From Mytilus californianus (Eukaryota), in the NCBI RefSeq assembly GCF_021869535.1, contig NW_026262679.1:96100001-96164000 (forward strand): 64,000 nucleotides of DNA, given 5' to 3'. Shown here one piece after another: positions 405 to 64,000 of this stretch; positions within the stretch are counted from its first letter, which is position 1; the number at the start of each line of letters is the position of its first letter. A program made the translations under genes and the position numbers. Below the pieces are notes generated by a model, which saw nothing but the letters and a program-made list of their open reading frames with translations, did not search any database and was not told the origin of the DNA.

Positions 405-3400
405 GTTTTCCATAGTTCATTTTGTTGATATAGTCGAGCGATTTGATTTGTCAGGTTTTATGGACTTTTGCCTTTTTGAATTTACCTAGGAGTTCAGTAT
501 TTTTGTTAATACATTTTTTTTTAATCATAATGCATTTATTATTGGTTCCTATTCGTACATGCTTTATAAATTATAAAAAGTTGAATTTGTAGTTACCTCC
601 ATATCAAACTCTTATTTGACTCTTTGTTTTGTCAGACAGTTCAACAATTCTTATATGGTTGCCATTCGTGTGACTTGTAGGTTGACTGATATCTAATATT
701 CATATCAATTTTCTTTTATGATTCGAGGTTGAGCAAATGTAGATTAAATGGTTGAATTGTTTAAATAAGAATTTGAAATACATTCTTATTTTAAAAGGGT
801 GGATATAATTTTTACAAATTTCATTATAATGATTATCAATCCTTTGTTAAATATTTGGCACATGTAATAATATTTTAAATCTATTTCCTCGTGTAGGCCA
901 GATTGTCTGACCTGAATACATTATATATGTCTGGTAGTTTTACAGCAATAAATTAAATGCAGTTACAATTATTATCCCTTCATGTCACGTTGTGGTTAAT
1001 CTTTGATCTTTTCCATTATCATTTAAGATCAGATATTCCCCAACATGTTTATCCTTTAAAAAAGTGAACTATTTAGAAGATAAAGGCTTCATAAAGAAAT
1101 GAATAGTAAGATATAATTATGCGTATTGTTGACAGTTAGATGTAATAACTATATGTCCTTTTACTATGTTTGCTACTATTTTCTGACTGAAAAAATATAG
1201 AATTATATTAAGGTCTTACCAGCAACGATGAGCCATATCTTATATCCACACTTTGTTTTAATTATCCCAACGGGGACAATCGTCGTGCCCAGGGTGGGGG
1301 TGGACTTTTGAACGCAATTTCTATGAGATCGTTTGACAAAAACCTTACCTCGTAGGAATCTTTCCCATCATATGAAATTGACAATATTGTATCGCCATTT
1401 TGAATCGACCAATTTTACGTTGAAATTCTCCTTCGCCATGATCGTTCAAATTTAAAGTATTTCTTAAAAAACTTATCATAAATAAGACAAAAATCTAGAT
1501 ATAGATTTGGTTGCTCGCAGTTACTTCGATCATGTGTATTTGACCATATTGTACTGAAGTTTTGAATTGACAATTTTTACGGGAGTTATGGAACTTTGAC
1601 CGTTTTTTTTTCTTGTATTATAATAAGAATAACGGTACCAATGTTACTGCACCAGATGGGCATTTCAACAATAAATGTCTGAAATCTAAATTAATTTCCA
1701 TAATTTTGTAACAGGATATTCGTAACATAGAATTAATGTTTGCCATCATGTGCAGCCAATTATGATGTACCGTCATTTTGCTTTTGCTATTTTTACTGGT
1801 TTTACGGCGTTCCAATCTTCTAATATACTTATTTGTATACCTTTTATAGACATAATAAAACACGAGTTTCAGTGTTTTAACAAATATATAATTTACGTTA
1901 TTCAAAGGGTCAAAAGTAAAACCAAATAATTTCCATGATACCTGTATCTTAAATAAAAGAAACACAAGGGGAAAACTTAACCCTTAACACAGTGCATTGA
2001 TATCGACTGATGTTTTTCCCCTATGGGTAGATTGCATTAGCCAGATTTGGCACAACTTCCTAGAATTTTTTGTTTTCAATGCTCTTCAACGTCGTTTTTG
2101 ATTTGGCTGTTCAAGTGTTTAGATTCGCGATCTTCACCGATTAGTCTTGTTTAGAGGAAACGTGTGACTTACGTTGCACATTATACGCTTTAATTGTTAG
2201 TAGAAAGAAATTTTTTAATTTTATATTAAATAGATATTTATGAAAATGAAAAATGCAACCAATTGATACTATTTTCATACGCTATTGTGCAATGTAAAGT
2301 TGGTGTTATTTGTTTTATAGAATCTCCGGTAATTCAAGGGAACAAGGGGAACCATGATTTTTATCAAAATATCTGAAATATACTTTAAGTTATCCATATG
2401 CCACATTGTACTCATTGCGATGCATGTAGGTGATTCATGGAAAAACAAACATAGTTGATCAAAAGCTAGCAGAACTTTTCAAATTTCAAAAAACTTATTG
2501 TCATATTTTACCTTCTTATTTTCTCATAAACTTTTCTTAAAAATTTCCCTGATATTTTGTGAGAATTATAGAACATAATAATGCAGCCAAAATTTATGAC
2601 TCATTACTGTTATAACATACATCTGTCAGGTATAGGTGTTATCCAAAATTTCAATAAATGCCATGAAGTATAATCGTTATATCCGTATTTTAAATTACTT
2701 CTAAGAAACGTTTAAAATCATATAATCTACCCCCACGCAATTTCTATAGTTTACTATGCACTTTTAAAAAGGTAATTTAAATAGACCGTTTTCATCTGAA
2801 TGGAACATGAATAATCTGTTTTAAACATACGGTATTATTACACGGAAAGGAATGTTTATTGTGACGTAATAGTTTAAATGAATATTTCCCGTCACGAATG
2901 CTTTTACGTAGAAAATCGCTTAAGGTCCTGTTGACTTTTGCCGACAATGTATTGTATATAATGTCAGTGGGAGTAAATATAATACATGACATCTATTTTC
3001 AACAGTTTAAAATGTAAAGAAATTTTTAATTAGCTAAATCAATCCCAAAAAAACAATGGTTTAAAAATTCAAAAGCAAAATAGATCATAAATCCGTCTAT
3101 GTACATGAGATTTTATTGAGATGAGTAATACCCGAGATCACAAAAGCGATAGTTTTTTTATTATCGATATTTTCTCAAATTTTCCATGATCTTTCTGTGT
3201 AATAATTTTCAATCTTACTATACATGAGCGAGATGGACTCTTCTCATCCGTGTAGTGCAAATGAATATTTACCGATTTTTTTAAAAATCTTTTGAGCATT
3301 CAAATTCATTTGATATACAGCGGAGACAGATTACGATTGGATTTAAAAGATCCACAATCAACCACGGTTATGTGATAAAATTTGCTTCAATTATTGAAAA

Positions 3401-3552: not shown

Positions 3553-4010
3553 AAAACATGTCGCTAGTAAGTTGAGACACTGACAAGTCGTATCAGTCAA
3601 CCAGTTTGTGATGCTGACCTTAAAATTTATGCAGTGTCGATGTCAGTCGTTCGTCCTCATAACTCAGTTTATGTGTTAGGAGCACACCCATGTTAATGAG
3701 TTCCGAAAAGTGTGAACATGCACGAGCGTAACTTATTGACTGAGATATGTAAACGCCATATACGATTGAGAAGACGGTATGTTACTTCTGAGAAATTGGA
3801 CGCTGACAAGTGGAAGTTGGAATCATCACGTTTGTCATAGATTAGTTTTGAAGTCATCCATCTGTGTCAATATGGAGGACAAAAATCAAGATATGAAGCA
3901 GACTTTTGGTAGTATCCATAATCTCAAGTTCATTATGATATATGAGATGAAAGCACTCATTGAAATGTGGGTTATTGTTGGACACAACTGCATCAATATA
4001 TCTGAAATTG
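3553..4010 (-). pseudogene. Penelope-like retroelement reverse transcriptase, C-terminal fragment with stops and frameshifts
   Basis: Minus-strand translation across frames gives FRYIDAVVSNNNPHF..LIYHNELEIMDTT..HIDTDG..IYDKRDDSNF..GVYISQSISYARACSHFSE..KF*GQHHKLVD*YDLSVSQLTSDMF. This matches the recalled invertebrate PLE RT pattern FRYIDD..ELEIKDTT..YDKRDDF..YGVYISQLIRYARAC. Confidence 0.8.
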
Positions 4011-7000
4011 AAATAAAAAATAGAGCAAACGAAAATATAACCATGCATCCGGTATATGACAGAAAGAACAGCAGTTTGACAATACTTTGGTATTAATCAT
4101 TAATGGTAATAAAAAAGGAAGAAAACAATCTAAATGAATTCGGCAACTGTGTTTATCACCACCATCCTCATTTTACTGTATTCTTGATTTTTCTTTTATC
4201 TTTGGTTTTTTTTTCTTTATTCGTTTGCAGTTTAATATGATAGCCGAATATTGACGTCATAATACCGATGTCAGCTGAGGTGTCAAAAGTAAACAGACAA
4301 AAAGGGGAGTGATAACACCGGAATGTTGCATGCTCTTCAATCGTAATAAGACTGTTTTCACTTCTGTTCGTAGAATTGAAAAGTAGAAAAGCTATTTAGT
4401 TTTCGTTTTGAAGAAATAATCCGTCTTATCTATTAACCTTCCTTAACCTCAAACCTTGATCTTACATGATAGTTCACTTTGTGATTTGGGTTGAAGAAAC
4501 GAAAATATCAATGCGGTTCGAAAATGATAAAACTCAGAGGAAAAATGTTCGTCCACAGATATGAATAGAGGTAGATGCGGGATAAGGTCAACGAGACAGA
4601 AACCCAACGACGAAGATAACCAAATTACATCTATCGGACAACATGCAGTAGACAAAAAACAGGTGTCTAAACAATATATATGTTGAAGCTGTAAATCGCT
4701 ATGAGTCTTTTAAAGTCGAAAATAAATAAATCAGGTATAAACAAAATTTTTCACTTAAAGTTTTGCAGTCACAGTTTACAACTTGTAAATTAGAGAGTTC
4801 ACTGTTGTAATGCGGGTTATATATATTTATATATTTGAGAAAAAATTTCTTTTTCACTCGAAATATTTGCACAAATTTCAAACTAAGTAACTTTCATATA
4901 AACGATCAGCTATAGCACTGGGAGTTCAACATATTGCATGATTGTTCTGCTGTCCTGCTATAGCAAGAGAGGTAAAGGTCAGTGTTTTATCAAATCAGAT
5001 AAACACAGGTACAAAAATGATTAAATTGCAACGAGAATGAATTCATGCATACAACATTGATATGCTTGTGGATTATGTAAACATTTTTTTTTAATTTAAA
5101 TTGGTATGTCAATTCTATACAAATTCAAATTTTACAAAAAAAAAATTCCAAGAAAAAATATATTGTTGTTTTTTTGTGTGTTCTCATCTAAGTATTCACT
5201 ATATCGTACATAATTTACATATCTGTATCATGTTGCTTTTAAGTTGGAGTCTATGCGATATTACATGTAGGTTTTAGTATTTTCCATGGTTTTCGTCTCT
5301 TTTGTCTATAACAAGAAATATGCAGCGAAGTGTTTCAATTTCAAAAAAGGGAATACTTTGGTTCTCAAACTCGAAATGGGCCAAACTTTGATTGCAGAAG
5401 GACTTAGAAATTTTATTGAGCTCGGAAAGATTGAGTTTTCTTTTGTGGTGAGCTGCCCACGTATGCATTCAAACAAGATCCGGCCAATTTATTTAATAGT
5501 TGCAATACAGTTTCGAATGTGTTTTGACAAAAAAATTCCCAACGATTCCTAGATGAAAACAAATGTTGAAAAGTAGGTTAATATATAGTCATCTATTTTA
5601 ATTGAAGATGCAACTGAATTATAACACACAAGGGTGTATATCATATTCCTAATTATTTGTAAAATTATTCAATCAAACGAGACCAAGTTATTTGGCATAT
5701 CCGGATACTAATTAGTAAGAATTATAATAGACATTGACAGTTCCGTTTACGATTTCTGAATGTCTCATTGATTTCATTCATATAATCTAAATTCCAATAA
5801 ATGTTTTTTTTGGCTGATTAAAATCGCTATATATTACAAATAACTTATTATTGGGGTTTTTATTCTTTTTCTCAATATCGTCACGATTCAAGGTATTATT
5901 GTCCTGCAAAACAACAACAAGATATACATCAAAATAGTAAAATTTTCATTTTGTTTGTGGGGTTTCTGCGGGGGGACTTAAATCTTGTTTGACTCACACT
6001 CACAATCAGTGGTAAAAAGAAAATTTAAACAATAACATGAACAACAACAATGTCGAAAGGGGCCTTATGAATCGTTAAAACCTGTTGCCGGATGAAACTG
6101 ACTGAGAGCTGAAATTTTTTGGATCTTACTTAACTATTTACTTTCTTACATATTGTAATTATTAAAATTTTGAAATACAACTTCACTTTTTTTAAATACG
6201 TATAGGTACATATAAATGTATAAACGCTTTAAATTTAGTCTGTGTACTTTTATGCACAATACTGAAACCAGTAGGTATTTAAATGTGTATTGAAAAGTTT
6301 TTTCACAAATATATCTTCTGCAAAAAGAAAAGATTTTCTACCTGGAGAAATGTTTACAATGACTTAAATATGAGACAAGGTCATTTAAAATTGTTTTTCT
6401 CTTTTTGTCATATTATACACATATGACTATACACAAGTGACTGTCTGTATGAATATGGCAAATATAATATCGATCTTGTTTCATGCTGAAAATAACGTTC
6501 CTTTTAAATATTAACATATATCAAATATCATTTAACCTGAGAAAAATATCAGGTCATGACACAAATTGGATTAAAAATAACTCATGATGATGGATAAGAA
6601 TTCATGACAAAACATCGCTACACGCACTATGAAATAATACAGCGATTGTATTACTGTTTTATTTCTCCAAGTCAAGACGAACCCTTTAATACAGACTTAC
6701 TAAACAATTATAGGTTACCGTACGGCCTTCTACAATGAGCAAAGCTTATACCGCATAGTCAGCTTTTCTTTAAAAGGCCCGGCATGATTAAATGTGAAAC
6801 AATTCAAACGAGAAAAAAAAAACCAATGGCCTGATTTTTGACAAAACAATAAACGAAAAAAATATGACGGATAGCAACCAACGTCAACCGCAAATTTTTA
6901 GGCTCCTGATTTGGGACAGAATTTTTTTTAATTGTAGCGGAATTAAACATGCATGTAAGCGCTAAACACTTCCCTTTACCTGGGACATTGCTGTAACAGC

Positions 7001-13039: not shown

Positions 13040-13720
13040 CGTATTTCTTCCTTTATTTGTCTCCAAATGAATTATGTCCATCTTGTCACCTCGAACATGT
13101 GAGCACTATAAAATTGAGATTGGAAATGGGGAATATGCCAAAGAGACAACAACCCGACCAAAGAGCAGATAACAGCCGAAGGCCACCAATGGGTCTTCAA
13201 CGCAGCGAGAAAATCCCGCACCCGGAGGTGGGCCTCAGCTGGCCCCAAAATAAAAATGTGTACTAGTTCAGTGAAAATGGACGTCGTACTAAACTCCAAA
13301 ACATATAAATGAACTAAAATTAAAAAACATACAAGACTAACAAAGGCTAGAGGCTCCTGACTTGGGACAGGCGCAAAAATGCGGCGGGGTTAAACATGTT
13401 TAGTGAGACCTCAACCCTCCCCTATACATCTAGCCAATGTAGAAAAAACAAACACACTGTAATACGCACAGTAAAACTCAGTTCAAAAGAAGTCCGAGTC
13501 CGATGTCAGAATAGGTAACAAAAGAAACTAAGCAAAATGACAACGATACATAAATTAACAAAGGACTACTAGCAGTTACTGACATGCCAGCTCCAGACCT
13601 CAATTAAACTGATTGAAAGATTATGTCTTCATCATATGAAAATCAAGCACAATCCCTCCCGTTAGGGGTTTAGTATCATACCATCATAAAATATATGAGA
13701 AGAACATAACCCGTGTCATG
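13040..13720 (-). mobile_element. Abundant non-autonomous interspersed repeat (family C) carrying a twister-like motif
   Basis: Reverse-complement homologue of 59290-59790, with a partial copy at ~44660-45000. Confidence 0.75.
13345..13435 (-). ncRNA. Twister-ribozyme-like motif, P5-type permutation (best copy)
   Basis: Minus strand: GGCTAGA-tgtata-GGG-GAGGG-ttgaggtctcactaaacatgtt-TAA-CCCC-GC-C[GCA tttt TGC]G-CCTG-TCCCAAGT-CAGG-agcc-TCTAGCC. It has P5 (7 bp), P2, P3, P4, L4 UCCCAAG and GAGGG, as in the recalled twister consensus. P1 is not Watson-Crick. Confidence 0.7.
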
Positions 13721-15772: not shown

Positions 15773-15966
15773 TCAAAGCCGAATATTTGAAAGACAATGG
15801 CGTATACGAAGCGAAAAAGTCGAAGAGCTATATGACCAAAAAGGAACTAAAGATAGTCAAAAGTAAAATAACAAAAATACCGAACTCCAAGGAAAATTCA
15901 AATCAAAAAGTCCTTTATCAAATGGCAAAATCAAAAGCTCAAACACATCAAACAAATGGAAAACAA

Positions 15967-16066
15967 CTGTCATATTCCTGACTTGGTACAGGCATTTCCT
16001 TATGTAGAAAATGGTGGATTAAACCTGGTTTTATAGCTAGCTAAACCTCTTACTTGTTTGATAGTC
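15967..16066 (-). ncRNA. Twister-like motif, family B
   Basis: Minus strand GAGGT-ttagctagctataaaaccaggtt-TAA-TCC-AC-C[ATTTTCT..AGGAAAT]G-CCTG-TACCAAGT-CAGG-AATATGACAG. The L4 ACC / GGT pair replaces CCC / GGG. Confidence 0.55.
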
Positions 16067-17526
16067 GCATAAAATTCCATTATATTGACAACAATGTGTG
16101 AACAAATCCATCTAACTAAAGATCAATTTTGCCTGAGGGAGTTGAAACCTCAGTTTCTTCATAATTCCCAACTTTATAAACGAACAATTTTAGAAAGGTT
16201 TGTTATAAATGATGTTAGTACCGAAGTACTGACTACTGAGCCGATGAAACCCTCGGGGACTGATAGTCCACCAGCAGCGGTATCGACCCAGTGCTTTAAA
16301 AAAAATAAAAACAGCACTTTATTAATTTTATGCGTTCGAAGCGCTTTTTTTAATTTACGTTCACCAAAAACGCTCAACGCCGAATATTTGATAGCCAATC
16401 ATGTATTAGAACCGAGAGCTATATATATATGTATGACCAAAAAAGCACCTATAAAAGTAATAGACAAATCCATCAACAATCAACTTTGCCGAGGGAGTTG
16501 AAACCTTAATAGAAAAGAAAGGATATGGGGTATCCATCCATCACACAAAATCAGTATATGCACAGCAAAAAAAAAAAAAAAAAATAAAAAAAGGAAAGGC
16601 ACATCTCCTTTATTGTTGTTCATCATCTCAAATCACAGTAAGGCCTTCCACACGGTGCTAAAAACTCTAACCTCACTGCAAGTTTTAGACGACCCCTAGC
16701 ACCGGTTTAAGCGGAATTCTCTGCAAACTGACGATCACGCCACAACTGTGAAATGAAGAACAAAGCCATGTAGTAATATCAATGAAATACATCTGGCAAA
16801 GAATCAAACATTTATTATTCACTTTGTTTAGCAAACTACACATCAGTGTATAATGTTTTTATTTTGAATCAAATATTTATTTATGACATATAAAAGGCTC
16901 CCTAAGATCCTCTTTTTTATATGTCTGGGATAACTTTGTGGTTTGCTTTTAGTCTCACAACATCAAAACGGGCGAAACACAATAAAAACATTTCGGTCTT
17001 GTAAAAATAAAAAAATGTGGTATAATTGCCAATGAAACAACTCTCCATCAAAGACTGAATGACATAGAAGTTAACAACTATAGGTCACCGTACGGCCTTC
17101 AACAATGAGCAAAACCCAAACCGCATAGTCAGTTATAAAAGTTTCTTTAAAATTTCTAACTTTATAAACGAACAATTCTAAAAAGGTTTGTTATAAATGA
17201 TGTCCATACCGAAATAATGACTACTGATCGAGCTGATGATACCCTCGGGGACTAATCTGTTTAATTATTTGTTTAGCAAACTCCACATCAGTGTATAATT
17301 TTTTTACTTTGAATCAAATATTTATCTATGACATATATAAGGCTCCTTAATATCCTCTTTTTGAAGTGTCTGGAATAATTTTGTGGTTTGTTTTTTGTCT
17401 CACACCATAAAAACGGGCGAAAAACAAGAAAAACGCTTCGGTCTAATTCCTTACTTCTTATTAAAACATAAGAAAAATAAATTAAGGAATATGGATAATA
17501 GCATATATCTCTGATCGATTTATCAT

Positions 17527-24014: not shown

Positions 24015-24400
24015 CTTATAAAAATAAGAAGATGTGGTATGATTGCCAATGAGACAACTCTCCACAAGAGACCAAATGACAAAGAAATTAACAACTATAG
24101 GTCACCGTACGGCCTTCAACAATGAAAAAAATCCATACCGCATAGAAAGCTATAAAAGGCCCCGAAATGACAAATTTAAAGCAATTCGAACGAGAAAACT
24201 AACGGCCTAATTTATGTACATAATAATGAACGAAAAACAAATATGATACACAGAAACAAACGATAACCACAGGCTCCTGACTTGGGACAGGCACATATAG
24301 AATGTGTCTCGGTTAAACATGTTAGCGGGCGCCCCCCCCCCCCTAACATGGGACAGTGGTGTAACAGTACAACATTAGAACAAACTATAATCAAAGTACT
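24015..24400 (-). mobile_element. Interspersed repeat family A, near-complete copy
   Basis: Full AAGAAGATGTGGTATGATTGCCAATGAGACAACTCTCCA..GGCTCCTGACTTGGGACAGGCACAT block on +. The twister-like motif on - is degenerate but keeps the palindromes GGGCGCCC and AACATGTT. Confidence 0.8.
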
Positions 24401-29588: not shown

Positions 29589-30329
29589 GACCTAGTCAGT
29601 GGTTGTCCTAATGTCATTTGGAGAATATGGAACTAATGGCGGATTTTAATTGTAAAATACCTGTCCGAGATCGTATTCTGACATCAATGGTCTTTTTGTG
29701 TCGTTGGGTCAATGTCTGATATGTAAAACATATAACCAATATATATATATATATATATATTTATTTGCCTATCACAAGTTAAGACATTTTTAACCCTGTC
29801 AAATTCTGTATGTGTCTGTCCCAAGTCAGGAGCTTGTAATTCAGTGGTAGTCGTTTGTTGCTTTATATCATATTTTTTTTTCGTGTTTATTGTTTTGTAC
29901 ATAAATCAGGCCGTATGTTTTTTCGTTTGAATTGTTTTACATTTGTCATTTCGGGGCATTTTATAGCTTGCTATGTGGTATGGCTTTTGCTCATAGTTGA
30001 AGGCCGTACGGTGACATATAGTTGCTTATTTCTACGTCATTTGCTGTATATTGGAGAGTTGTCTCATTCTGATCATATCACATCTTCTTATTTTTACAAA
30101 AATAATGAGATGTGGTATGATTTCAAATGAAACAGTTATCCATCAGAGTCCAAAAGACGTGCATATAAGCATCTGACCGTACGGTACTGAAAGCCAGTTC
30201 AAAGCCAATAACAACTAAACAAACTCTTAAATCTAAGACGAACTATCATTTTATATACTTTTTATGTATATCAAATAAACAACCCTTCTACGGAAACTGC
30301 CTCTGCCATGTCACGTTTATTTAATTTCA

Positions 30330-36934: not shown

Positions 36935-37311
36935 CGATGTTCCAACTTAACGAAATATCTACACAAAATTAATCCCATAAAGACAATTCAAACGTTCACG
37001 AATTTGTTATTTTGTAGCAACAGAGTTATGTGACTTATTTTAAATTAAGCCCAAAAAAAAACCCATTATCACAAAAATAACAAAACAAAAAGACCATAAA
37101 CAGTCCATAAAACTCTACACAAAACTAATAAGAATGAATTTTTCCACAACCAATAATTCATACCAGCTTTTAATATTAAGTACTACTTTATTATGTTAGG
37201 TTATTTACTTAAATTAAATTGTTCAAATACAATTATGTTTATACGAAATTCAAAAAGTTATTTTAACTTCCTGTTTTGATTTTATCAGAATGTTTGAAAA
37301 GACTATTCTAT

Positions 37312-37403
37312 TCATACAAGTGAGAGGTTTAGCTAGCTATAAAACCAGGTTAATTCCACCATTTTCTACATAAAAAAATGCCTGTACCAAGTCAGGAATA
37401 TGA
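37312..37403 (+). ncRNA. Twister-like motif, family B
   Basis: TCATA..GTGA-GAGGT-ttagctagctataaaaccaggt-TAA-TTCC-AC-C[ATTTT..AAAAT]G-CCTG-TACCAAGT-CAGG-AA-TATGA. Confidence 0.55.
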
Positions 37404-37951
37404 CAGTTGTTATCCATTCGTTTGATGTGTTTGAGCTTTTGATTTTGCCATTTGATTACGGAATTTCCGTTTTGAATTTTCCTCAGAGTTCGGTATTTTT
37501 GTTATTTTACTTTTTTTTTACCAACAGCGGCTTCAGTATTATTCAATTTTTAATCGGTTTTAATCCTACTAGTAAATCCTTCAGGCTTATAAATGTGCTT
37601 CAGGCAGTTGTAACTCATTCATTGAAATTCCTTGTTTTTAATTGTAAGTAGACCTAAACAGTAGGACATCACTTACGAAGAATATGATTTACATTTATTC
37701 TTCACAATTAAGAAACACCAAATCCTACAATTTCATTTGTCGAGAGCACTTTGCTAGAGTCTAACATCAAATTGTGGTCACATCAACTTGAAACTTAGAA
37801 CACATGTTTATTTAAATTGATATGCAAAATTGCGGTTAACCCTGATAAACCCTGATTAGACGGTTCACTGAACACGAAAATGTGATAGCGGGTAATGGTG
37901 TTATATTTTTGATACCTTGTACCAATACGATTAAAATATTTTAAATATATA

Positions 37952-44231: not shown

Positions 44232-45289
44232 GAAAATGGTGAAAACTATTTTAATTTTTTGGTGTTCATTTTTGAATGATGATTGCCTATAGAATTGTAT
44301 ACAGTATTGTTGATTCTTTTTGTTGTTTAAACTTAATCTGAGTCTCGTTTAAAAAAAGCATGAATGGATTGCTTACATAATCACTACGCAAAGTATTTTC
44401 TGAAGAAACAGCCTTTTGAAATACAGCGGATGGCTTGTAGTTTAATTATTATTAAATTTCATAGCTAGCACCGTGATATTAAACGTAAATGGAGATAGCA
44501 ACTAATTTATAGTACATACATGTATATGTAAAAGACACCTTCTGCAGATTTCGTTAAGAGTGGGCTCTTCGGGGCAGTTGCAGAGGCAATATTTGTTAGA
44601 GACCCCAAAATTTATTCTTTGGCAGTGTCACTCAAAATTGTGGACGTTTAAGTTACTAGTATATATGTCTACATTCGCTAGAGGTAAATGGGAAGGCTGA
44701 GCGCTCATAAAACCTGTTTAACCCAGTCGCATGTTTGCGTCTGTCCTTAATCAGGAACCTCTAGCCTTTGTTGGTCTGGTATATTTTTTAATTTTGGTTC
44801 ATCTATATGTTTCGGAGCATAGAATGGCGTCCATTTTCTTGATCTAGTGTACATTGTGTTTCGGGGCCTGCTTGGGGCTGCCTCTGGGTGTGGGATTTCT
44901 CGCTGTGTTGAAGACCCATTGGTGGCCTTGGGTTGACTTGTATATTTTGGTTGGGTTGTTGTCTCTTTGAAACATTCCCCGTTTCTATTCGTTATTCTAT
45001 ACATGTAGCTGTCAAAGATACTTTTGTAAAAAATGCAAAAGACGCAGTTTTGGAATATGTAACTTCTTTCTAAAAAATGGGTTAATCATACCCAAATCAA
45101 TTAAGTTAATCTAGGAATAACATGCTGACAAATATAACTCTTTTTACTTTTTTTTTGACACGAAACTCATTGTGCAGTAGATGGGAAACTGATTACATAA
45201 AGTTTGAATTGTCTGTATAAAACGTCATAAATTTTTATATCAATATGAAAAAGTGCAGTTTTAAAGAGTTGTTAGTTATTTGAAAACAA

Positions 45290-47852: not shown

Positions 47853-47896
47853 ACGTCACTGATGAGTCTTGTAAAGACGAAACGCGCGTCTGGCGT
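47853..47896 (+). ncRNA. Minimal type-I hammerhead ribozyme, core intact
   Basis: ACGTCA-CTGATGA-GTCT[tgtaa]AGAC-GAAA-C[GCGC]GT-C-TGGCGT. Stem I 6 bp, stem II 4 bp, GUC cleavage triplet after 47890. Confidence 0.9.
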
Positions 47897-49733: not shown

Positions 49734-50921
49734 ATGGATAAAGCCGCAAATTTGTCTGCCCAATTGTCTAGGCTTGAGAAAGATCTTCAGGACACCTTGT
49801 CAAGGAGTCGCCATTCACATTCTACACCCATTCCCGGGTTTGCAAGTGACTCAGGGATGATTACTACACAGCGCAATGACCAAACGTCTGTTGACAAAAC
49901 AACCCCGATTCATAGTACCCCAGTTGGTCCACATTATATAGGTATTGGCGCAAGACCAAAGGTCTTCCAAGATGAAGGAGCCTCAAATCAGTTGAAACCT
50001 CATGATATTCAAATTGTTAAGGAAAACCCCGTCAACTTGCCCGATAAGAAGTCAACGGGGAAGGCACCAGGGACAAGCATGAGTAAGCGTAGAGATATTA
50101 AGGTTGCAACGTACGATGGGTCAGGTGATTGGAATGACTACCGTTCATATTTTGAGTCATGTTCCTCTATTAACGGTTGGGATAACCTAGAGACAGGGTT
50201 ATACTTATCGGCTTCCCTAAGGGGTCGGACTCAAGGTGTTCTTGGGGATTTATCAGATGACAAGAAAATTCATTGACCAGTTGTTTCGATCTCTAGAAGA
50301 GAGGTTTGCTCCCCAAATCAGTCAGAGTTATACACGGTAAAATTGAAAGAAAGGAAGCAGAGGGCTTCAGAGTCGCTTCCTGAATTAGGACAAACGATAC
50401 GCCGACTGGTGAATAAAGCGTACCCCACTGCCCCAGGAGATGTTAAGGAAACATTGGCTAAAGAACACTTCTTGGATGCATTGATTAATACCGAAATGCG
50501 TATAAAAATCAAACAATCACGGCCCCCTGACCTTAATTCCGCTATTTGTTTAGCTGTAATGTTAGAAACGTTTTACAAGGCAGAAAAGCAATTTGAAGTA
50601 GGGAAAGCCCATTTAAGAGTTGTAGACAATAATGAACAGGTGGTAAGAGAGTCGGAGTCTCATGATAAGTTGTCAGATAAAATTGAAGGCGTGTTAGCAG
50701 CTCTCAATGATCAATTGGCAAGTATGAGTAAAGAGTTAGATGAATTAAAGAATAAAGCCAACATGCCTGGGCCAGCTGATTGGTCGAAGTTTCTTTGCTT
50801 TAATTGTGGTAAACCCGGCCACATGGCTAGAAATTGTAATGCTCATAGAAATAGGAGGCAGAACAACCAAGGATCACCAGGACCTTCGGTTAGAAGTATG
50901 AACAACCGTAGTGGTAAATGA
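49734..50921 (+). pseudogene. gag: gag (frameshifted near 50276-50343)
   Basis: Capsid-like KVATYDGSGDWNDYRSYFE..NGWD..LYLSASLRG and QRASESLPELGQTIRRLVNKAYP; CCHC knuckle CFNCGKPGHMARNC. Confidence 0.9.
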
Positions 50922-50949
50922 AAACGTAAATCTTTGTACCTCGGCTTAA

Positions 50950-53900
50950 ATACACTTAACAATGAAGCAGGGCTCTATGTAGAGTTATTTATAAATGGAA
51001 TCCCTGCCAAGTTTCTTGTTGATACGGGAGCTACAGTTAGGTAGGTGACGGATACTCTTGAGAAATTTAAGTCCCGTGATAGGCCAAGTGTACGACAGGT
51101 CACTCAAGAAATTACAGTAGCCAATGGAGAGTCTTTAAAAATCATTGGTAATGCACTGTTTTCTGTTAAGTTGGGAAGCTTTCACACGGTCATTGAAGGT
51201 GTTATAGCAGGTTTGTCAGTGGAAGGTATTCTTGGACTAGATTTTCTGCAAACAAACGGTTGTAAAGTTGATTTAGGCAATAGAGTGATAGGAAGGGATA
51301 ATCAACAAATACCTTTGTTACTACAGGGAAAGTTAGGCGTTTATCGGGTGGCAGTTAAAGATAAAATTAGCATAACCCAAGGTCAGAGGTAGTATTTCAG
51401 GGCGAAGTACTGAACTATGATTCAGCTGTTAAGGTTACTGGCATTATTGAACCAAGTGAAGAATTTCTTGATCGAGGAAAGGCTCTTGTAGGGAAATCTG
51501 TTGTCACGTCTGATAAGACAGTTCCTGTTAGGCTGTTGAATATAAGTGACAGTGTCCAAGTACTAGATGTCGGTATTGTGGTCGGAAATCTCAGCGGAGT
51601 TGAAGTTGTTAGTCAGGTAGACAATGATAAGGATTGTACTCTTAGCATTGGAAAAGTTATTAGATAGGTCTAGTGAGAGTCTTGAGCATGGACAAAAGGA
51701 AAAGGTCACAGAGTTGTTATTGAAATTTAAGCACCTTTTTGCAGCTTCGGATTCAGATCTTGGACAAACAAATATTGTGAAGCACAGGATTGACACTGGT
51801 GCTGCAAGGCCAATAAAGCAGCCACCACGGCGCAAACCCAAAAGGTCTTAGGGAGGAAGTAGATCAACATTAACGATATATTGGAAAGAAAAATTATTGA
51901 GCCTTCGGAAGGACCATGGTCCTCTGGGATAGTTTTGGTTAGAAAGAAGGATGGAACCACTAGGTTTTGTGTAGACTAAAGATAGTTAAACGCTTGTACT
52001 ATCAAAGATGCGTATCCTTTGCCCCGAATTGATGATTCGCTGGAACAGTTGTCAGGAAACAAGCGCTTTTCTACTTTGGATTTATGTTTTGGATACTAGC
52101 AGGTAGAAGTAGAGCAATCAGATCGCCCTAAAACGGCCTTTGCCATACGGATGGGTCTTTATCAGTTTCGCCGTATGTCATTTGGTCTGGCAAACGCCCC
52201 TGCCACCTTTGAGCGGCTAATGGAGAATGTTATGGCAGAGCTCCAATGGGACATTTGTCTCAAATATCTGGACGATATCATAGTTTTGGCTAATACTTTT
52301 GATGAAATGATACATAATTTACGCAAGGTTTTTGTGACGTTACAAGGCGCAGGGTTTAAACTCAGTTGCCTTTCTCGGACATGTTGTTTCGGAATCGGGT
52401 GTTGCCACCGAACCCGATAAAATTAAGTGTATAAAAGAATGGCCAGTTCTCCAGATCCTTCTTGGGTTTGTGTGGCTATTATCGCCGGTACATAATAAAT
52501 TTCTCAGATACGGCTAAGTGCCTACACCAAATGACCGAAAAGGGTCGCGAATTTCTATGGACAAATGATAGTCAGGAGGATTTTGAAAAGCTGAAAGGAA
52601 AATAAGTAAGTGCCCCAGTCCTCAGTCATCCTGATTTCTCCCAAACATTTATTCTTGATACGGATGCAAGTATCAGAGCGATAGGTGGTGTTTTATCACA
52701 GGTTATCGATGGTGAGGAACATGTTATTGCATATGGGAGTCGTACCCTTTCAAAAACAGAGCGCCGGTATTGTGTTACTAGGCAGTAACTGCTAGCCCTA
52801 GTCCATTTTGTTCAACATTTTAGGCATTTCTTGTACGGTAGGCGGTTTATTATTAGGACAGATCACAGCTCATTACAATGGCTCATTCGATTCAAAAACC
52901 CAGATGATCAACTAGCCCGTTGGCTGGAAGATATAAGTTCATACGATATGGTTATTAAGCATAGGCCAGGTACGTAACATCGCAATGCTTTGGGTCGACC
53001 CTTGTAAACAGTGTGGCTTTGTCGAGAACTGGGAAGCAGTTGGCTCAGTCAATATGGTAAAATTACAGGGAGGCAATAATGATGATCTTGAGCCAGATAT
53101 ACGACAATTGCAAGAAAAAGACAAGGACTTGCAGACTGTTATAGGATGGTTGACTGCTGACTCAAGACCATCATACTCGCAAACCGGCAAACACAGTTAT
53201 GTTGTTAAGTCCCTTTGGTCCCAGTGGAATGTTTTGAAGGTTCAAGATGGTATATTGTTTATGGAAGACTCGGAAACAAATTTGAAACAAGTTGTCATAC
53301 CAATGAAGGAAAGACGTAAAATTCTTGAGTTTGCTCATGATAATAGGACAGCTGCTCATTTGGGCATTAAGAAAACTTTGGCTAGGACTAAAGAAAAAAA
53401 TTATTGGCCAGGTGTTAGAGGTGACACTTGGAGTTATATTGCTGGTTGTTCAATTTGTAATAAGAGAAAGAAACCAATTACTAAAAGAAAGGCCCCAATG
53501 CAAGTTAAAGAGTCAGATTATCCCATGGAGAGAATTGCTATGGATATCCTTGGGGAACTCCCCGAAAGTGACAAAGGCAATAAATATATATTAGTTATAA
53601 GTGACTATTATACTAAGTGGACAGAGAGTCACCCCATGCCCAACATGGAGGCAACTACAGTTGCAAACATTTTTTATGACTGAAGTTATTTCTAGGTTTG
53701 GGGTACCAACTATTATCCATTCCGATCAAGGTAGTCAATTCGAGAGCCACTTGTTTAAGGAAATGTGGAAGTTGCTTCGAATTCAGATAGAAAAGACCCG
53801 TACGACCCCTTATCACCCAAAATCTGACGGGATGGTAGAACGATTCAATAAAACTCTCGCTACAATGCTTACAGGGTATGTAAATGAATATCACTCCAAT

Positions 53901-54557
53901 TGGGACATATTACTTCCTTGTCATGATGGCCTATAGGTCCTCTCAACATGAGACCACTGGTTACACCCCCAATAGATTAATGTTGGGAAGGGAAGTGTCT
54001 ACACCCCTAGACTCAATATATAAGTTACCATCCCAAGTAAAGGCAATACCTCAGAATCAATTGGCATGGGAATTACAAGAACACATGGAAGAGGCACATC
54101 AGATTGTTCAGAGACATGTCTCTGGACAAATGTTAAGGTCAAAGAAAAACCATGACAAAAATGTCAGTTGGGCTAAATTTGAACCTGGCAACATGGTTAT
54201 TTTCCCCTTAGAACCCCGGGTTTGTCGCCAAAGTTCACTAATCAGTGGCGTGGTCCATATAAGGTGCTTAAGATAAACTCAAGTGTCACATACACCGTCA
54301 ATTGTGGACGTAAGGGAGTGAGTCAAGTCATACATGTAGATAGGATGCGCCCTCGTCCCCAACAATTACTAAGGGGGAAAACCTTGTTGACGAACAAAGT
54401 CCTGAGAAAACAGGCGAGTTAGAATCGGAGATTCATGAAGAAGAAGTTATCATTGACTCTTTTCCTTTATTGGATCTAGATGATCATGAGGATGTAGATA
54501 ATGATAGGCCAAGAAGGTTTAGAAAACTCCATCGTGGATGAGGACTACGAAAGTTAA
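50950..54557 (+). pseudogene. pol: pol (protease, RT, RNase H, integrase) with many stops and frameshifts
   Basis: FLVDTGA (DTG 51021-51029), YLDD (52265-52276), FILDTDAS, TDHSSLQWL, integrase H..HLG..CSIC, MDILG, HSDQGSQFES, GMVERFNKTL, WRGPYKV; stop at 54555-54557. Confidence 0.95.
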
Positions 54558-54642
54558 ATTGTTAAGTTTTGAGTTGTAAATAGACAGTGTAAATATGTAT
54601 TTTTAAATATCAAATATCTGTTTTATAATTGTAGATCTAAAT

Positions 54643-55399
54643 ATGGTAAATACAAAGATAACGCCAGCAAAGTCCTCACATGAGACTTACAGATGTCCTG
54701 TCTGTGGTGATAGGTTTTCCACAGCAAAAGAGTGGGGTGACCATATAGTCAAATGATGTGAGGAGAAGCGGGTGTCCACCTCTTTCATTTGCATTGAACC
54801 GGTGTGTACTTATGCAGCCCTTCTTGAAAGAGATCTCAGAAGGCACAACAAGAGGAAACACCAGAAATCTGCCGTAGCTGTGCCGGAAAGTGATACTGAT
54901 TCTGGTGAAATTCAGTTTAGTCAGAGACCGACTGCGTCATCCTGCATTGATGTCACGTCGGCCACTCCGGATGTAGCATCAAGCCCGGAGATAGCACCAG
55001 TGAGAAAGCCAACCAAGCCTCTGCCAGTGTTTGGCTCGGCCAAGAAGAGGCAGTTGATGGAACGCCTGGCAGATAGTGTGAGACCGGTTAAAGAACCGAG
55101 GACTACTGCCACCGCAATAAGAAGTAATTTAGTAGTGGCTTCCTCTATCACGTCTCCAGTTCTATTTACAAGTCCATTGGCACATACTCACGTAACGTCG
55201 TCGCTAGGAGGTGGCGTCTTTCGTCAGCCGGCTTGTGGTCTGATTGTTCCTGCCAGGAGGACAATTGAAACACAAACCCCCGAGGTCATGAGAATATCTA
55301 AGACATGGTTCTCATCACCATGATAAAAGAACTGTCCGATTATGGTATGAAGATGGTGTAAAGGTAGAAGAGACCACAGAAGAAACTTGGGACGATTGA
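54643..55399 (+). pseudogene. Third ORF of the Gypsy element: tandem zinc fingers plus S/T/P-rich region (~250 aa repaired)
   Basis: ATG 54643; YRCPVCGDRFSTAKEWGDHIVK*C (Cx2Cx12H, stop at 54754); in-frame FICIEPVCTYAALLERDLRRHNKRKH (Cx4Cx12Hx4H). A probable frameshift at ~55321 leads into DKRTVRLWYEDGVKVEETTEETWDD*. An acceptor-like TTTTATAATTGTAG ends at 54634. Confidence 0.7.
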
Positions 55400-55691
55400 C
55401 TGTACATTACATACCGTGTGTAAATAATTCTACATGGAAGCCAGGGAGGCTACATGTCAGTACTTCGTGCCAAGATACGTGTACGAAATCAATTATCAGT
55501 GTTTAAGAACTGTAAAATAAAGGCAACAGTAGTATACCGCTGTTCGAAATTCATAAATCGATTGAGAAAAAAACAAATCCGGGTTACAAACTAAAACTGA
55601 GGGAAACACATCAAATATAAGAGGAGAACTACGACACAACAGAAACACAACATTAAAATGTAACACACACAGAAACGAACTATAATATAAC

Positions 55692-55784
55692 AATGGCCAT
55701 TTTCCTGACTTGGTACAGGACATTTTAAGAAAAAAATGGCGGGTTGAACCTGGTGTTGTGGCTAGCCAAACCTCGCACTTTTAC
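55692..55784 (-). ncRNA. Twister-like motif, family B (downstream unit)
   Basis: Minus strand GAGGT-ttggctagccacaacaccaggtt-CAA-CCC-GC-C[ATTTT..AAAAT]G-TCCTG-TACCAAGT-CAGGA. Confidence 0.5.
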
Positions 55785-55966
55785 GGCAATGTTAAATATA
55801 ACACTAAAATGACACCATTACATGACATGAATACAGTACAACATTACGGACAGAGAATAACGCAAATAAACAATACAATATAGTACATTTGAACAACGAA
55901 ACAACAGAAACACTGAAGTGAACAAACGACAATGCAACACACGTAGAAACAAACTATAAGATAACA

Positions 55967-56064
55967 ATTGCCATTTTCCTGACTTGGTACAGGACATTTT
56001 AAAGAAAAAATGGTGGGTTGAACCTGGTTTTGTGGCTAGCCAAACCTCCCGCTTTTATGGCAAT
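55967..56064 (-). ncRNA. Twister-like motif, family B (upstream unit)
   Basis: Minus strand ATTGCCAT..GCGG-GAGGT-ttggctagccacaaaaccaggtt-CAA-CCC-AC-C[ATTTT..AAAAT]G-TCCTG-TACCAAGT-CAGGA-aa-ATGGCAAT; P5 is 8 bp. Confidence 0.55.
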
Positions 56065-56190
56065 GTTAAATATAGCATTAAAATGACAACAGTACATGAC
56101 AGGACTAAAATACAAATAAATGGGAGAATATATAGGACAGAGAAACATACGAATAATAGCTAACAAAAGGTACCAGGTTTAAAATTTAAT

Positions 56191-56234
56191 ACGCAAGACG
56201 CGCGTTTCGTCCACACAAGACTAACCAGTGACGC
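56191..56234 (-). ncRNA. Hammerhead-derived motif with altered core
   Basis: GCGTCA-CTGGTTA-GTC[ttgtgtg]GAC-GAAA-CGCGCGTC-TTGCGT; two core changes relative to CUGANGA. Confidence 0.55.
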
Positions 56235-58212: not shown

Positions 58213-59289
58213 CTATTATATAGCCTAATAGCTTATAGTGTAGAAGTTAGTCTCTCTTCTCTTATTTTTTTTTTATATTTCCAATATAGTTTTTTATCAA
58301 AAAGTAGAGGGGCGAGAGCGGGATTGGGGGAAAGCAACGTTTTGCCTCAGGCTCCTTATCCCATGCATAATAAAAATGTCACATTTGCTTGGGTTTGGGT
58401 AATTATTTGTTATGGTTTGTACTTTTAACCTTTGATTAAAGACATGTATTGTTAATTCAATTGACGTTATTTCAGGTAAACATACATATAGAGTTATAAT
58501 TCCGGTTGGTATTAATTCAAGTGTTTTTTTTTAACATTGACTTAAACTGCATTTTTATTCGAGTGATTTTGTTTTTGCGAAACTACACATTTGAGCAAAA
58601 TGTATTTTGTTAGTTCACCTTGTTCTTGTGACACTGTAATAACATCAATGCATATAGAACCTCAATTCATTTAAGGTATGTTTTCTCTGGTCCCGAGGTT
58701 GACCTTTAAATACTGGTTAGACTGTAGTTATTTAAGGTAATTAACTGTAAGAAATTTAATGCACCACATGTCTCAGTATTATACTGATTTCTCAAACTGT
58801 CCTATTTACCAATATCAATATTTGTTTTGTTAATTTGTTCTTATCGTAACGTATTTTTTTTTTTATTTGGCATTTATTTTATATGTATTAAATTTTTGTC
58901 AATCAATCAATAAATAATTTCGATACCAATGTTTACAGGGAACACAATCTTGTCTAGGGAGAAGATATGATAATAAGCCACTTTTTGGTCCCTTGAATTC
59001 AAAAATCAAAAAGCATATTTCTGTTGATCACGAGACATTAGTCTGTCAGATTTTTGTATTTGGAAAAATTGTTCTTTATCTAACTTGCTTTAGGACTTCT
59101 TTAAATGCAATGCGAAACTGCAAAAACTGTCAACACAGTCTAAAAATAATGACGTCATTCACCTCAAAAGCTAACCAAACCTTTGAACAGACTTATTCAG
59201 AAGGGATATAGTTACGATACTGTTGTCAGGTCATTAAAAATGGCATTTTTGGGAATTAATATTGATTCACTCATAGAGTCTTTGCATCC

Positions 59290-59790
59290 GAAATAAACAC
59301 ATTTATTCTAAAACCAGTTGTTGGCATGATACGGGTTATGTTCTTCTCGGGAGGGATTGTGCTTGATTTTCATATGATGAAGACATAATCTTTCAGTCAG
59401 TTTACTTGAGGTCTGGAGCTGGCATGTAAGTAACTGCTAGTAGTCCTTTGTTAATTTATGTTGGTCTTTGTCATTTTGCTTAGTTTCTTCTGTTATCTAT
59501 TCCAACATCGGACTCGGACTTTTTTTAAACTAAGTTTTACTGTGCGTATTGCAGTGTGTTTGTTTATTCTACATTAGCTAGAGGTACATGTATAGGGGGA
59601 GGGTTGAGATCTCACAAAACATGCTTAACCCCGCTGCATTTTTGCGCCTGTCCCAAGTCAGGAACCTCTGGTCTTTGTTAGACTTGTATGTTTTTTTTTT
59701 AAATTTTGGTTCATTTATATGTTTCGGAGTTTAGTATGACGTCCATTTTCTCTGAACCAGTATACATTTTTGTTTAGGGGCCAGCTAAAG
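59290..59790 (+). mobile_element. Interspersed repeat family C
   Basis: Reverse-complement homologue of 13040-13720. Confidence 0.75.
59577..59672 (+). ncRNA. Twister-ribozyme-like motif, P5-type permutation
   Basis: GCTAGAGGT..GGGG-GAGGG-ttgagatctcacaaaacatgct-TAA-CCCC-GC-T[GCA tttt TGC]G-CCTG-TCCCAAGT-CAGG-a-ACCTCTGGT. Full 4-bp P2; predicted scissile U/A at 59626/59627. Confidence 0.68.
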
Positions 59791-60269
59791 CCGCCTATTG
59801 TTGAATAATTGTCATAAATATTTAGATATCACTGAGCCACGTATTTAAACGCAAAGATATGTTATTATAAAATGTCTTACAAAGTAATCTTAGGAACTGT
59901 CAAGACTCATCAAGGATACTTATTATTTTGTTCGCTAGACGTGTTTCGTCTACATAAAACTAAAAAAAAACAGTTAGAAAGCCAATTCAAATACAAAGCT
60001 AAAGATCATTATTTGCCGTAAAATTCGAAAAGTTGTGACAAACACGGTTAAAGCAATATTTAGGGTGGGTAGATAAAACCTTAGTGCTTTGAATATTTCA
60101 ATATTTTTTTTTCAAATTGAAAGTGAATTTACAGAAAATGAACAAATCTATAATATTTTAGTCAGCTGACTACTGGGATGGTGATATCCTTGGGGACTAA
60201 ACGTTAACCACCAGTGGTATCTACCCATTGGCTGTAAAAACTCTTCAAAGTTATAAGCTCATAATTGGT

Positions 60270-60312
60270 ACGCCAGACACGCGTTTCGTCTACATAAGAC
60301 TCTTCCGCGGCG
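60270..60312 (-). ncRNA. Degenerate hammerhead
   Basis: Core CGGAAGA (one change), stem II GTC/GAC, GAAA, CGCGTGTC. Confidence 0.5.
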
Positions 60313-63429: not shown

Positions 63430-63750
63430 ACAAATAAGAAGATGTGTATGCCAATGAGACAAATCTCTAGCAGAGACCAAACGACGTAAAGACATAAAAG
63501 TTAACAGCTATAGGTCACCATACGCCGTCAACAATGAGCAAATCCAATACCGCATAGTAAGCTTTAAAATGCCCAGAAATGACAAATGTAAAACAATTTA
63601 AACTAGAAAAACTAACAGCCTGATTTATATACAAAACAATAAACGAAAAACAAACATTATGTACAACAACAAACAACCACTGAATAACGGGCTCCTGATT
63701 TGGGACATGCACATACGGAACGTGGCGTGGTTAAACATGTTAGCTTGAAA
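63430..63750 (-). mobile_element. Interspersed repeat family A copy
   Basis: AAGAAGATGTG..GCCAATGAGACAA..CTATAGGTCACC..GGCTCCTGATTTGGGACA..GTTAAACATGTTAGC. Confidence 0.8.
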
Positions 63751-64000
63751 AGAAAAACTATTAAAGTCAGTTAAAAAGAGCTTAACTTATCGATACATAG
63801 CATAAAGTAAAATTAAAGTATATTTTTTTTTACCTTGAAAACACTTGACAAGCAGGTACATTTAGTAGGTTAGATACCAGGCAAGCGGATGAGAAAGTCA
63901 AGCTATCATGTACTAATTCAGATTGTTTAACACCAGAAAATGTCATGAAGAATTCAAGTAGTAATTCCACTTTGTTGATTTCTGCCAAGTACTCGAAAGT

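Follow-up and report, generated by a model that had tools for sequence, protein, structure and literature searches.

The twister class of ribozymes was reportedly defined by Roth et al. in 2014. Among retrotransposons, the class is tied to the RTE element Perere-3 of S. mansoni, whose T-variants have a degenerate or absent P1 and N/AA cut sites (the slash marks the cut), and activity extends to twister variants whose P1 is mismatched or missing and to those in which C, G or A precedes the cut site (PMC8501958). An unpublished observation of twisters at the 5′ end of RTE elements is noted in a 2020 review, and a November 2026 paper cites, for twisters in retrotransposons, the Schistosoma Perere-3 study only (PMC13725137). 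Animal Penelope-like elements carry hammerheads with a very short helix III and a palindromic cap, which has been read as dimer action (PMC4209133). Naiads, the dominant retroelements of bivalve genomes, are Penelope-like elements without canonical hammerheads, and their hammerhead-free multiplication has been taken as a hint of a ribozyme that is dispensable or parasitic; the word "twister" has no occurrence in the main text of that study (PMC8557442). Our literature search found no paper joining twister ribozymes with Naiads. Here we analyse a window of 64,000 nt from Mytilus californianus (GCF_021869535.1, NW_026262679.1:96,100,001–96,164,000, forward strand), in which a module of ~90 nt recurs within repeats. 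We propose, with a probability of roughly 0.6, that the module is a twister-class ribozyme opened at P5 and a standing part of the 3′ untranslated region (UTR) of Naiads and of their 5′-truncated or non-autonomous copies. The ribozyme class is known; new would be the Naiad as its host.

A twister-like module common to four repeat families

The 17-mer GCCTGTMCCAAGTCAGG has ten matches at ≤2 mismatches in the window, where 0.01 is expected, and self-comparison places the repeats that carry it in four families, A–D (Table 1), across which the alignable part is the ~90-nt module only. A covariance model built from the module, R1, finds 13 copies in the window (E 2e-17 to 6e-3), six of them well kept, three moderately decayed and four badly decayed. 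A first-pass annotation, made from the letters of the window, had spoken of about a dozen intact or decayed copies and had flagged 13345–13435 on the minus strand; this interval (copy A1) is exactly one module, from the first to the last base of P5, and the other starts that it listed (59577, 15967, 37312, 55967 and ~20.98 kb) fit modules as well. Copy D2 has 12 consecutive G in place of the GAGGG region (24320–24332, minus strand), which could be either real decay or a homopolymer assembly error.

Read on the repeat strand, the module consists of P5, an A-rich joiner, P2′, GAGGK, UU, palindrome 1, YAAA, palindrome 2, N/AA, P2, RC, C-[P3]-G, P4 (CCUG), the loop UMCCAAGY, P4′ (CAGG), 1–4 nt, and the 3′ strand of P5. 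This is the order of the twister elements opened at P5, with the full set present in six window copies and about 120 external loci; in the segment table of PMC8501958, these elements appear in P1-open order. A-type copies have all the conserved core nucleotides of the twister class: N/AA, RC-C after P2, the G before P4, the loop UCCCAAGC, an A-rich joiner and GAGGG. The changes G49>U and C25>A go together in the B, C and E types. Loop position 31 is U and pairs with A or G at position 13. In A1, the first G of GAGGG is the presumed catalytic guanine, while its GGG is the 3′ strand of pseudoknot T2. Counted on the sequence, the predicted cuts U13392/A13391 (A1) and U59626/A59627 (A2) sit where the annotation had put them. 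The circularly permuted architecture that it had described is supported by the Rfam register, by covariation of pseudoknots T1 and T2, and by compensatory change in P5 and P3. At the sequence level, a canonical P1 is the only feature of a P5-open twister that the module lacks. A P1 formed by direct pairing of the bases after GAGGK with the bases before N6 was tried and gives no pairing, and the caution that the annotation had voiced about a non-canonical P1 stands. YAAAAC was rejected as the cut site, because P2′ would then not adjoin.

Rfam scores and phage-like relatives

A scan of the window at the curated Rfam thresholds (37.6 bits for Twister-P5, RF02684; 67.2 bits for twister-P1, RF03160) lists no twister, and a scan of a 561-nt stretch around A2 lists neither twister nor selenocysteine insertion sequence (SECIS). 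In a targeted scan, Twister-P5 aligns end to end with 13356–13422 (minus strand), at 19.1 bits, in the register proposed at first pass (P2′ GGG, GAGGG, P2 CCC, GC, and P4 with its loop), and twister-P1 aligns the UAA-to-P4 half of copy B2, at 20.7 bits. Both models align the module in the same register, and both scores stay below threshold.

Compared with Twister type P5 (RF02684), the module has the same P5, P2′, GAGGG, N/AA, P2, GC, C-P3-G, and P4 with the loop UCCCAAGY, and it shows a full-length model alignment and T1/T2 covariation. It differs in that palindromic boxes and a YAAA spacer replace the P1 hairpin that joins GAGGG to UAA, that loop position 31 is mostly U, that A25:U49 occurs in many families, that P2 is often imperfect, that scores are sub-threshold, and that it resides in an animal retroelement.

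Viral contigs searched for the 17-mer yielded canonical type-P1 twisters with an identical P4 stem and loop in three phage-like contigs (L001, L004 and L006; Table 1). These have GCCUGUCCCAAGUCAGG and A13:U31 of T1 in common with the module, whereas they differ from it by a normal P1, P1-open order and scores of 48.7–54.5 bits. Since these scores lie below 67.2 bits, threshold-level scans miss even clear phage twisters, and we do not take the lack of a threshold-level match in the window as evidence against a twister. The curated thresholds would thus hide real family members. Four matches from the collection scans (L002, L005, L009 and L098) appear to be coincidental.

Covariation of the pseudoknots and helices

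To place the module in a wider set, metagenomes were scanned with the pattern GAGGKTT-N38-68-CCTGTMCCAAGTCAGG. The resulting loci, at least 120, are AT-rich and eukaryote-like and hold copies of families A, B and C, of a very abundant family E, and of further families including F, G, H, K and P. An R1 search of these loci adds about 25 more divergent bystander copies, which are free of the pattern constraint. Covariation was counted on a 74-copy alignment made with R1, to which T1 and T2 were added for counting; because both are absent from the model, the alignment is not fitted to the pseudoknots.

In this alignment, 83.8% of cells are paired, compared with 75.7% in shuffles (0/500 reach the observed value) and 37–46% with partners slid. 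The T2 pair 25:49 is U-A in 37 copies, G-C in 17 and U-G in 3, with non-pairs in 12/70, while the remaining two T2 pairs are almost invariant (G-C in 56–60 of about 70 copies). For T1, pair 13:31 is A-U in 35 copies, G-U in 16 and G-C in 11, and pair 14:30 is C-G in 55. Fisher 2×2 tests, uncorrected for shared descent, give 2e-9 for T2 and 1e-3 for T1. Furthermore, T2 and T1 states are found in the combinations C:G with G:U, C:G with A:U, C:G with G:C, A:U with A:U, and A:U with G:C, so that more than one evolutionary event is needed.

P5 is retained as 5–12 bp with unrelated sequences in at least 12 families, and a subfamily of E has replaced A-U by G-C at the helix's inner end; P3 shows swaps between G-C and A-U and between U-A and C-G; P4 is 93% paired. 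The window-level covariation that the first-pass annotation had reported holds throughout. In particular, T2 is CCC:GGG in families A and D and ACC:GGU in families B and C; T1 occurs as both GC:GU and AC:GU; P3 occurs as GCA:UGC, ACA:UGU and AUUUU:AAAAU, and has a UUCG loop in decayed copy B3 (323–403); and P5 occurs as GGCUAGA:UCUAGCC, AUUGCCAU:AUGGCAAU and UCAUA:UAUGA.

Self-complementary boxes at the position of P1

The position of P1 is taken by two boxes that are perfect palindromes in family after family. All variants of box 1 (UGAGAUCUCA, UGGGAUCCCA, UGGCUAGCCA, UGGCAUGCCA, UAGCUAGCUA, UAGCGCUA, GGCGCGCC, GGCGCC, UGAGCGCUCA, UGAGCUCA and UGGGCCCA) and of box 2 ((U)AAACAUGUUU(A), AAACUAGUUU, UAAACCGGUUUA, AACC-A-GGUU and AAUC-U-GAUU) are self-complementary, and box 2 adjoins or includes the scissile dinucleotide. 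Hairpin loops need at least three bases, so the centres of hairpins could vary; the centres of the boxes instead stay self-complementary. As a monomer, the linker is practically unstructured (0 to −1.6 kcal/mol), whereas its homodimer reaches −9 to −20 kcal/mol, beyond shuffles in 11/12 cases. The closing region is reduced to a self-complementary stretch that would pair between two copies.

A close parallel is offered by the minimal and type I hammerheads of Penelope-like elements (PMC4209133), which resemble the module in having a Penelope-like host, a repeated terminal location, a closing helix made of a short palindrome, and tandem copies that provide two ribozymes. The ribozyme class differs (hammerhead versus twister), and dimer action of the module is a matter of inference only. 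The Perere-3 T-variants differ in other ways: they are of type P1, lie at the 5′ end of a long interspersed nuclear element and cut off upstream RNA, whereas the module is P5-open, lies in a Penelope-like 3′ UTR and has palindromic boxes (PMC8501958).

In the mechanism that we propose, P2, P3, P4 and P5, together with T1 and T2, would build the twister active site, and the RNA would cut itself between N6 and A7 (U13392/A13391 in A1). On the most economical reading, the two boxes would stand in for P1 by pairing between copies, and the partners could lie in one tandem (pseudo-long-terminal-repeat) transcript or in two separate RNAs, the mode of action proposed for most animal Penelope-like hammerheads. 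Cuts at two copies of a tandem transcript would release unit-length element RNA. Copies C2 and C1 form a head-to-tail pair with predicted cuts 274 nt apart. We consider self-cleavage of the module probable, and it may have a role in RNA processing. That the boxes pair between two copies, with cutting favoured when two twisters meet, is an arrangement to which we would give slightly less than an even chance.

The module follows Naiad open reading frames

One external locus, L047, contains an open reading frame (ORF) of 1019 aa that ends 180 nt before an E-type module. Its product has an N-terminal GIY-YIG domain (residues 139–230, 25.9 bits, cut-off 22.6), CxC, ADKA, and a C-terminal reverse transcriptase (RT; RVT_1 at residues 739–870, a weak match of 19.7 bits). 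The same layout, with an N-terminal GIY-YIG, CxC, DKA and a C-terminal RT, is described for the Naiad clade, together with AT-rich or (TA)n flanks and head-to-tail copies, as seen here (PMC8557442). Specifically, the Naiad CxC linker and the DKA that replaces DKG appear as TCDCS and ADKAS in L047 and as SCNCS and ADKAA in L014. Homologues of the L047 ORF occur in L014, L023, L034, L113 and L075, and modules of families A, F, G, K and P are preceded by homologous ORFs with 37–76% identity. The distance from a Naiad stop codon to the module is 180–340 nt. Between distant families, whose ORFs are 37–46% identical, only the module aligns. No canonical hammerhead was reported for the Naiads of PMC8557442, whereas here a twister-type module lies in the 3′ UTR; a hammerhead search of eight Naiad-bearing loci gave no match at E up to 5.

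One lineage resembles the clam selenoprotein Naiads described in PMC8557442, which have an in-frame TGA at a Cys position and a SECIS-like element right after the stop. In L014, L066 and L095, the homologue of the L047 ORF has a single in-frame TGA at the position of an L047 Cys (the Cys of VFVCK), a SECIS-like element just past the TAA stop (SECIS_1, 30.9–32.3 bits against a threshold of 35), and a twister module 333–337 nt past the stop. In a second Naiad lineage, represented by L034 (family F), whose ORF is 41% identical to that of L047, a SECIS-like element (614–678, minus strand, 28 bits) lies between ORF and module. L095 and L066 open with the tail of a preceding copy, in the head-to-tail arrangement typical of these elements.

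The link between the window and Naiads came from tblastn with the ORFs of external loci, which finds the end of a Naiad ORF directly upstream of the A2 3′ UTR (Table 1). By its identity to the L014 3′ UTR, the family A repeat around A1 corresponds to the tail region, 3′ UTR included, of a selenoprotein-type Naiad. An ORF listing and Pfam search beside the window copies gave no Naiad ORF, only a decayed Gypsy element at 49.7–55.3 kb. For families B, C and D no ORF was found, and their assignment to Naiads follows from the shared module only. In family E of the external loci, conservation of the tail stops about 120 nt after P5, followed by an AT-rich flank. The 5′ ends of copies fall anywhere between 20 and 540 nt upstream of the cut site, and only 14/95 copies retain the ORF end; most of the repeats are therefore 5′-truncated tails or non-autonomous derivatives. 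Bystander copies start at −10, −5 and +28 relative to A7, as counted on three copies only, the pattern-selected set being biased. On this reading, what the first-pass annotation had described as abundant repeat families are the 3′ tails of Naiad Penelope-like retroelements and truncated copies of them.

A Naiad-like RT fragment lies at 3554–4018 on the minus strand (34.5% identity to L047 residues 854–1013, E 4e-14), with no twister module downstream of it.

Weighing the twister assignment against other explanations

Several observations count against a P5-open twister. Canonical P1 is absent. The Rfam scores are far under the curated thresholds and alone prove little, and the small Rfam E-values stem from stretches picked for twister likeness. 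The external copies were fetched with a pattern that fixes GAGGK-UU and most of the P4 loop, the copies share descent, so that cell counts exceed independent events, and the window copies are mostly decayed. P2 is 65% paired overall in the 74-copy alignment: a clean G-C helix of 3–4 bp occurs only in families with CCCC after AA, families B, N and H have a C×U mismatch, and families C, O, E and P have CCC opposite GCGG, which leaves about two pairs and a bulge. T2 and P2 have a competitor in a nested helix, GGK-U:AA-CC, which most copies can form and which the minimum-free-energy folds of A1, C1 and C2 contain. Finally, the folding energies of whole modules differ weakly from shuffles (z −1.9 to +0.35), as expected if much of the stability sits in pseudoknots invisible to the folding program; they give no positive support.

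The nested helix may be an alternative, inactive conformer. Were it instead the functional structure, as a hairpin around the palindromes with the likeness to twister incidental, its presence in minimum-free-energy folds and the exchange at column 22:71 (U-A 32, G-C 15) would be accounted for. It would leave unexplained the coupled substitution at 25:49 in the distant P4 loop, the T1 changes, and the identity to phage twister P4 loops; moreover, eight copies pair in T2 and not in the nested helix, while two show the reverse. We regard this explanation as very improbable. Still less credible is an ordinary core domain of short interspersed nuclear elements, or a chance repeat, with no ribozyme ancestry. 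The module is common to unrelated short repeats, as such core domains are, yet it is located after Naiad ORFs, has all twister core elements in register, and has pseudoknots that covary.

Two further alternatives accept twister ancestry. The module could be a catalytically dead descendant whose fold persists in the 3′ UTR of Naiads for another reason, such as RT recognition, RNA stability or packaging. It is common for the RT of a retroelement to recognise a structure at the element's 3′ end, and the loss of P1, the weakening of P2 in the most abundant families and the sub-threshold Rfam scores point in the same direction. However, every well-preserved copy retains the nucleotides needed for catalysis only (the first G of GAGGG, and A7/A8), in families with ORFs about 40% identical, a conservation that is in part imposed by the fetch pattern. 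In addition, twisters without a good P1, and with other bases before the cut, are active (PMC8501958), so that the non-canonical P1 and the CAA sites leave activity possible. A dead twister is thus unlikely in our judgement, though a serious competitor. Somewhat more doubtful is an active twister that cuts as a P1-less monomer, its palindromes serving RNA–RNA dimerisation (in packaging or template switching) or acting as symmetric sites in double-stranded DNA. P1 is dispensable in the S. mansoni variants (PMC8501958), and the palindromes look like binding sites of proteins or like restriction-type sites (GATC, CTAG, CATG, GGCGCC, GGATCC). Nevertheless, box 2 adjoins and partly includes the scissile dinucleotide, so that it can hardly be set apart from the active site, and the parallel with the dimeric Penelope-like hammerheads is close.

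Implications for Penelope-like elements

If the module is a P5-open twister, it is conceivable, as a tentative scenario that we hold to be less than even, that Naiads swapped the hammerhead for a twister, which independently evolved a palindromic closing region and cuts only when two copies pair. Dimer-gated self-cleavage, by which tandem copies give off RNA of unit length that is possibly circular, would then be a general, required part of the Penelope-like life cycle. A conserved twister in the Naiad 3′ UTR would reverse the inference that the ribozyme is dispensable or parasitic, and would supply a second, independent example of a ribozyme linked to the replication of Penelope-like elements. 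Animal twisters missed by current models would number tens of thousands more, and there would be a natural twister with dimerisation boxes replacing P1, a testable design for concentration-gated or tandem-gated cleavage.

Features and other elements of the window

Table 1. Coordinates of repeats, module copies, parts of copy A1 and associated features (window positions unless a contig or alignment is named)
Feature	Position	Strand	Evidence or score
Family A repeats	13231-13661; 59348-59792; 44668-45001	-; +; +	self-comparison
Family B repeats	15859-16105; 37312-37518; 283-522	-; +; +	self-comparison
Family C repeats	55626-55841; 55891-56115	-; -	self-comparison
Family D repeats, five copies	near 6.9, 21.0, 24.3, 29.8 and 63.7 kb		self-comparison
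Copy A1, complete P5-open twister-like module, 91 nt	13345-13435	-	R1 74.3 bits; Rfam Twister-P5 19.1 bits, model positions 1-58/58
A1 P5 5′ strand GGCUAGA, pairs with UCUAGCC at 13345-13351	13429-13435	-	7 bp; in minimum-free-energy fold
A1 P2′ AGGG (13420-13423), then GAGGG (13415-13419)	13415-13423	-	Rfam alignment register
A1 palindrome box 1 UGAGGUCUCA, one mismatch from the family's UGAGAUCUCA	13404-13413	-	sequence
A1 palindrome box 2 UAAACAUGUUUA, perfect 12-nt palindrome, contains predicted scissile U13392/A13391	13391-13402	-	sequence
A1 P2 5′ strand CCCC (13386-13389), T1 strand GC (13384-13385), P3 hairpin C-[GCA UUUU UGC]-G (13372-13383)	13372-13389	-	
A1 P4 CCUG/CAGG, loop UCCCAAGU; loop CCC is T2 strand, GU is T1 strand	13356-13371	-	
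Copy A2, complete; P5 9 bp, P2 GGGG:CCCC, predicted cut U59626/A59627	59577-59672	+	R1 82.2 bits
Copy A3, decayed; GAAGG and UCCUUAAU	44676-44766	+	R1 45.2 bits
Copy B1, GAGGU and UACCAAGU	15967-16064	-	R1 81.6 bits
Copy B2, GAGGU and UACCAAGU	37310-37406	+	R1 85.5 bits; Rfam twister-P1 20.7 bits, UAA-to-P4 half
Copy B3, decayed; P4 loop deleted, UUCG loop in P3	323-403	+	R1 search
Copy C1, downstream member of head-to-tail pair; predicted cut C55746/A55745	55691-55791	-	R1 search
Copy C2, upstream member of head-to-tail pair; predicted cut C56020/A56019	55965-56065	-	R1 88.1 bits
Copy D1, decayed; AAGGG, UAU replacing UAA	20927-21023	+	R1 search
Copy D2; G run replaces 5′ half of core; P3, P4, loop and palindromes retained	24265-24361	-	R1 search
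Copy D3; GAGGG and box 1 deleted; adjoins (TA)n run	29764-29841	+	R1 search
Copy D4, decayed	63682-63778	-	R1 search
Copy D5, decayed	6893-6991	-	R1 search
Nested helix GGK-U:AA-CC	74-copy alignment columns 20-23 with 69-74; window example 13414-13418 with 13387-13391		
Family A element, 3′ UTR and tail of selenoprotein-type Naiad	13107-13700	-	87% identity over 647 nt to L014 3′ UTR
SECIS-like element, family A, about 200 nt upstream of A1	13633-13697	-	Rfam SECIS_1 30.1 bits against 35
Last ~45 codons of Naiad ORF, directly upstream of A2 3′ UTR	59153-59287	+	tblastn with L014 C-terminal part, 80% identity, E 6e-17
Canonical-looking type-P1 twisters, phage-like contigs	L001:4030-4100; L004:10321-10381; L006:7986-8058		48.7-54.5 bits, under 67.2

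The decayed Gypsy element is a long terminal repeat retrotransposon at 49734–55323 on the plus strand, with a gag zinc knuckle at 50343–50921 and integrase zinc-binding and core domains at 52985–53936. The window also holds a type I hammerhead ribozyme at 47853–47896 on the plus strand (35.7 bits, Rfam threshold 34) and a weaker relative at 60270–60313 on the minus strand (24.9 bits). In addition, a hammerhead-derived motif at ~56191–56234 (minus strand), in which CUGGUUAG replaces CUGAUGAG, has GACGAAACGCGCGUC in common with the copy at 47853. Its distance to the tandem formed by C2 and C1, which lies downstream, is about 130 nt, so that one insertion bears relics of two ribozyme classes.

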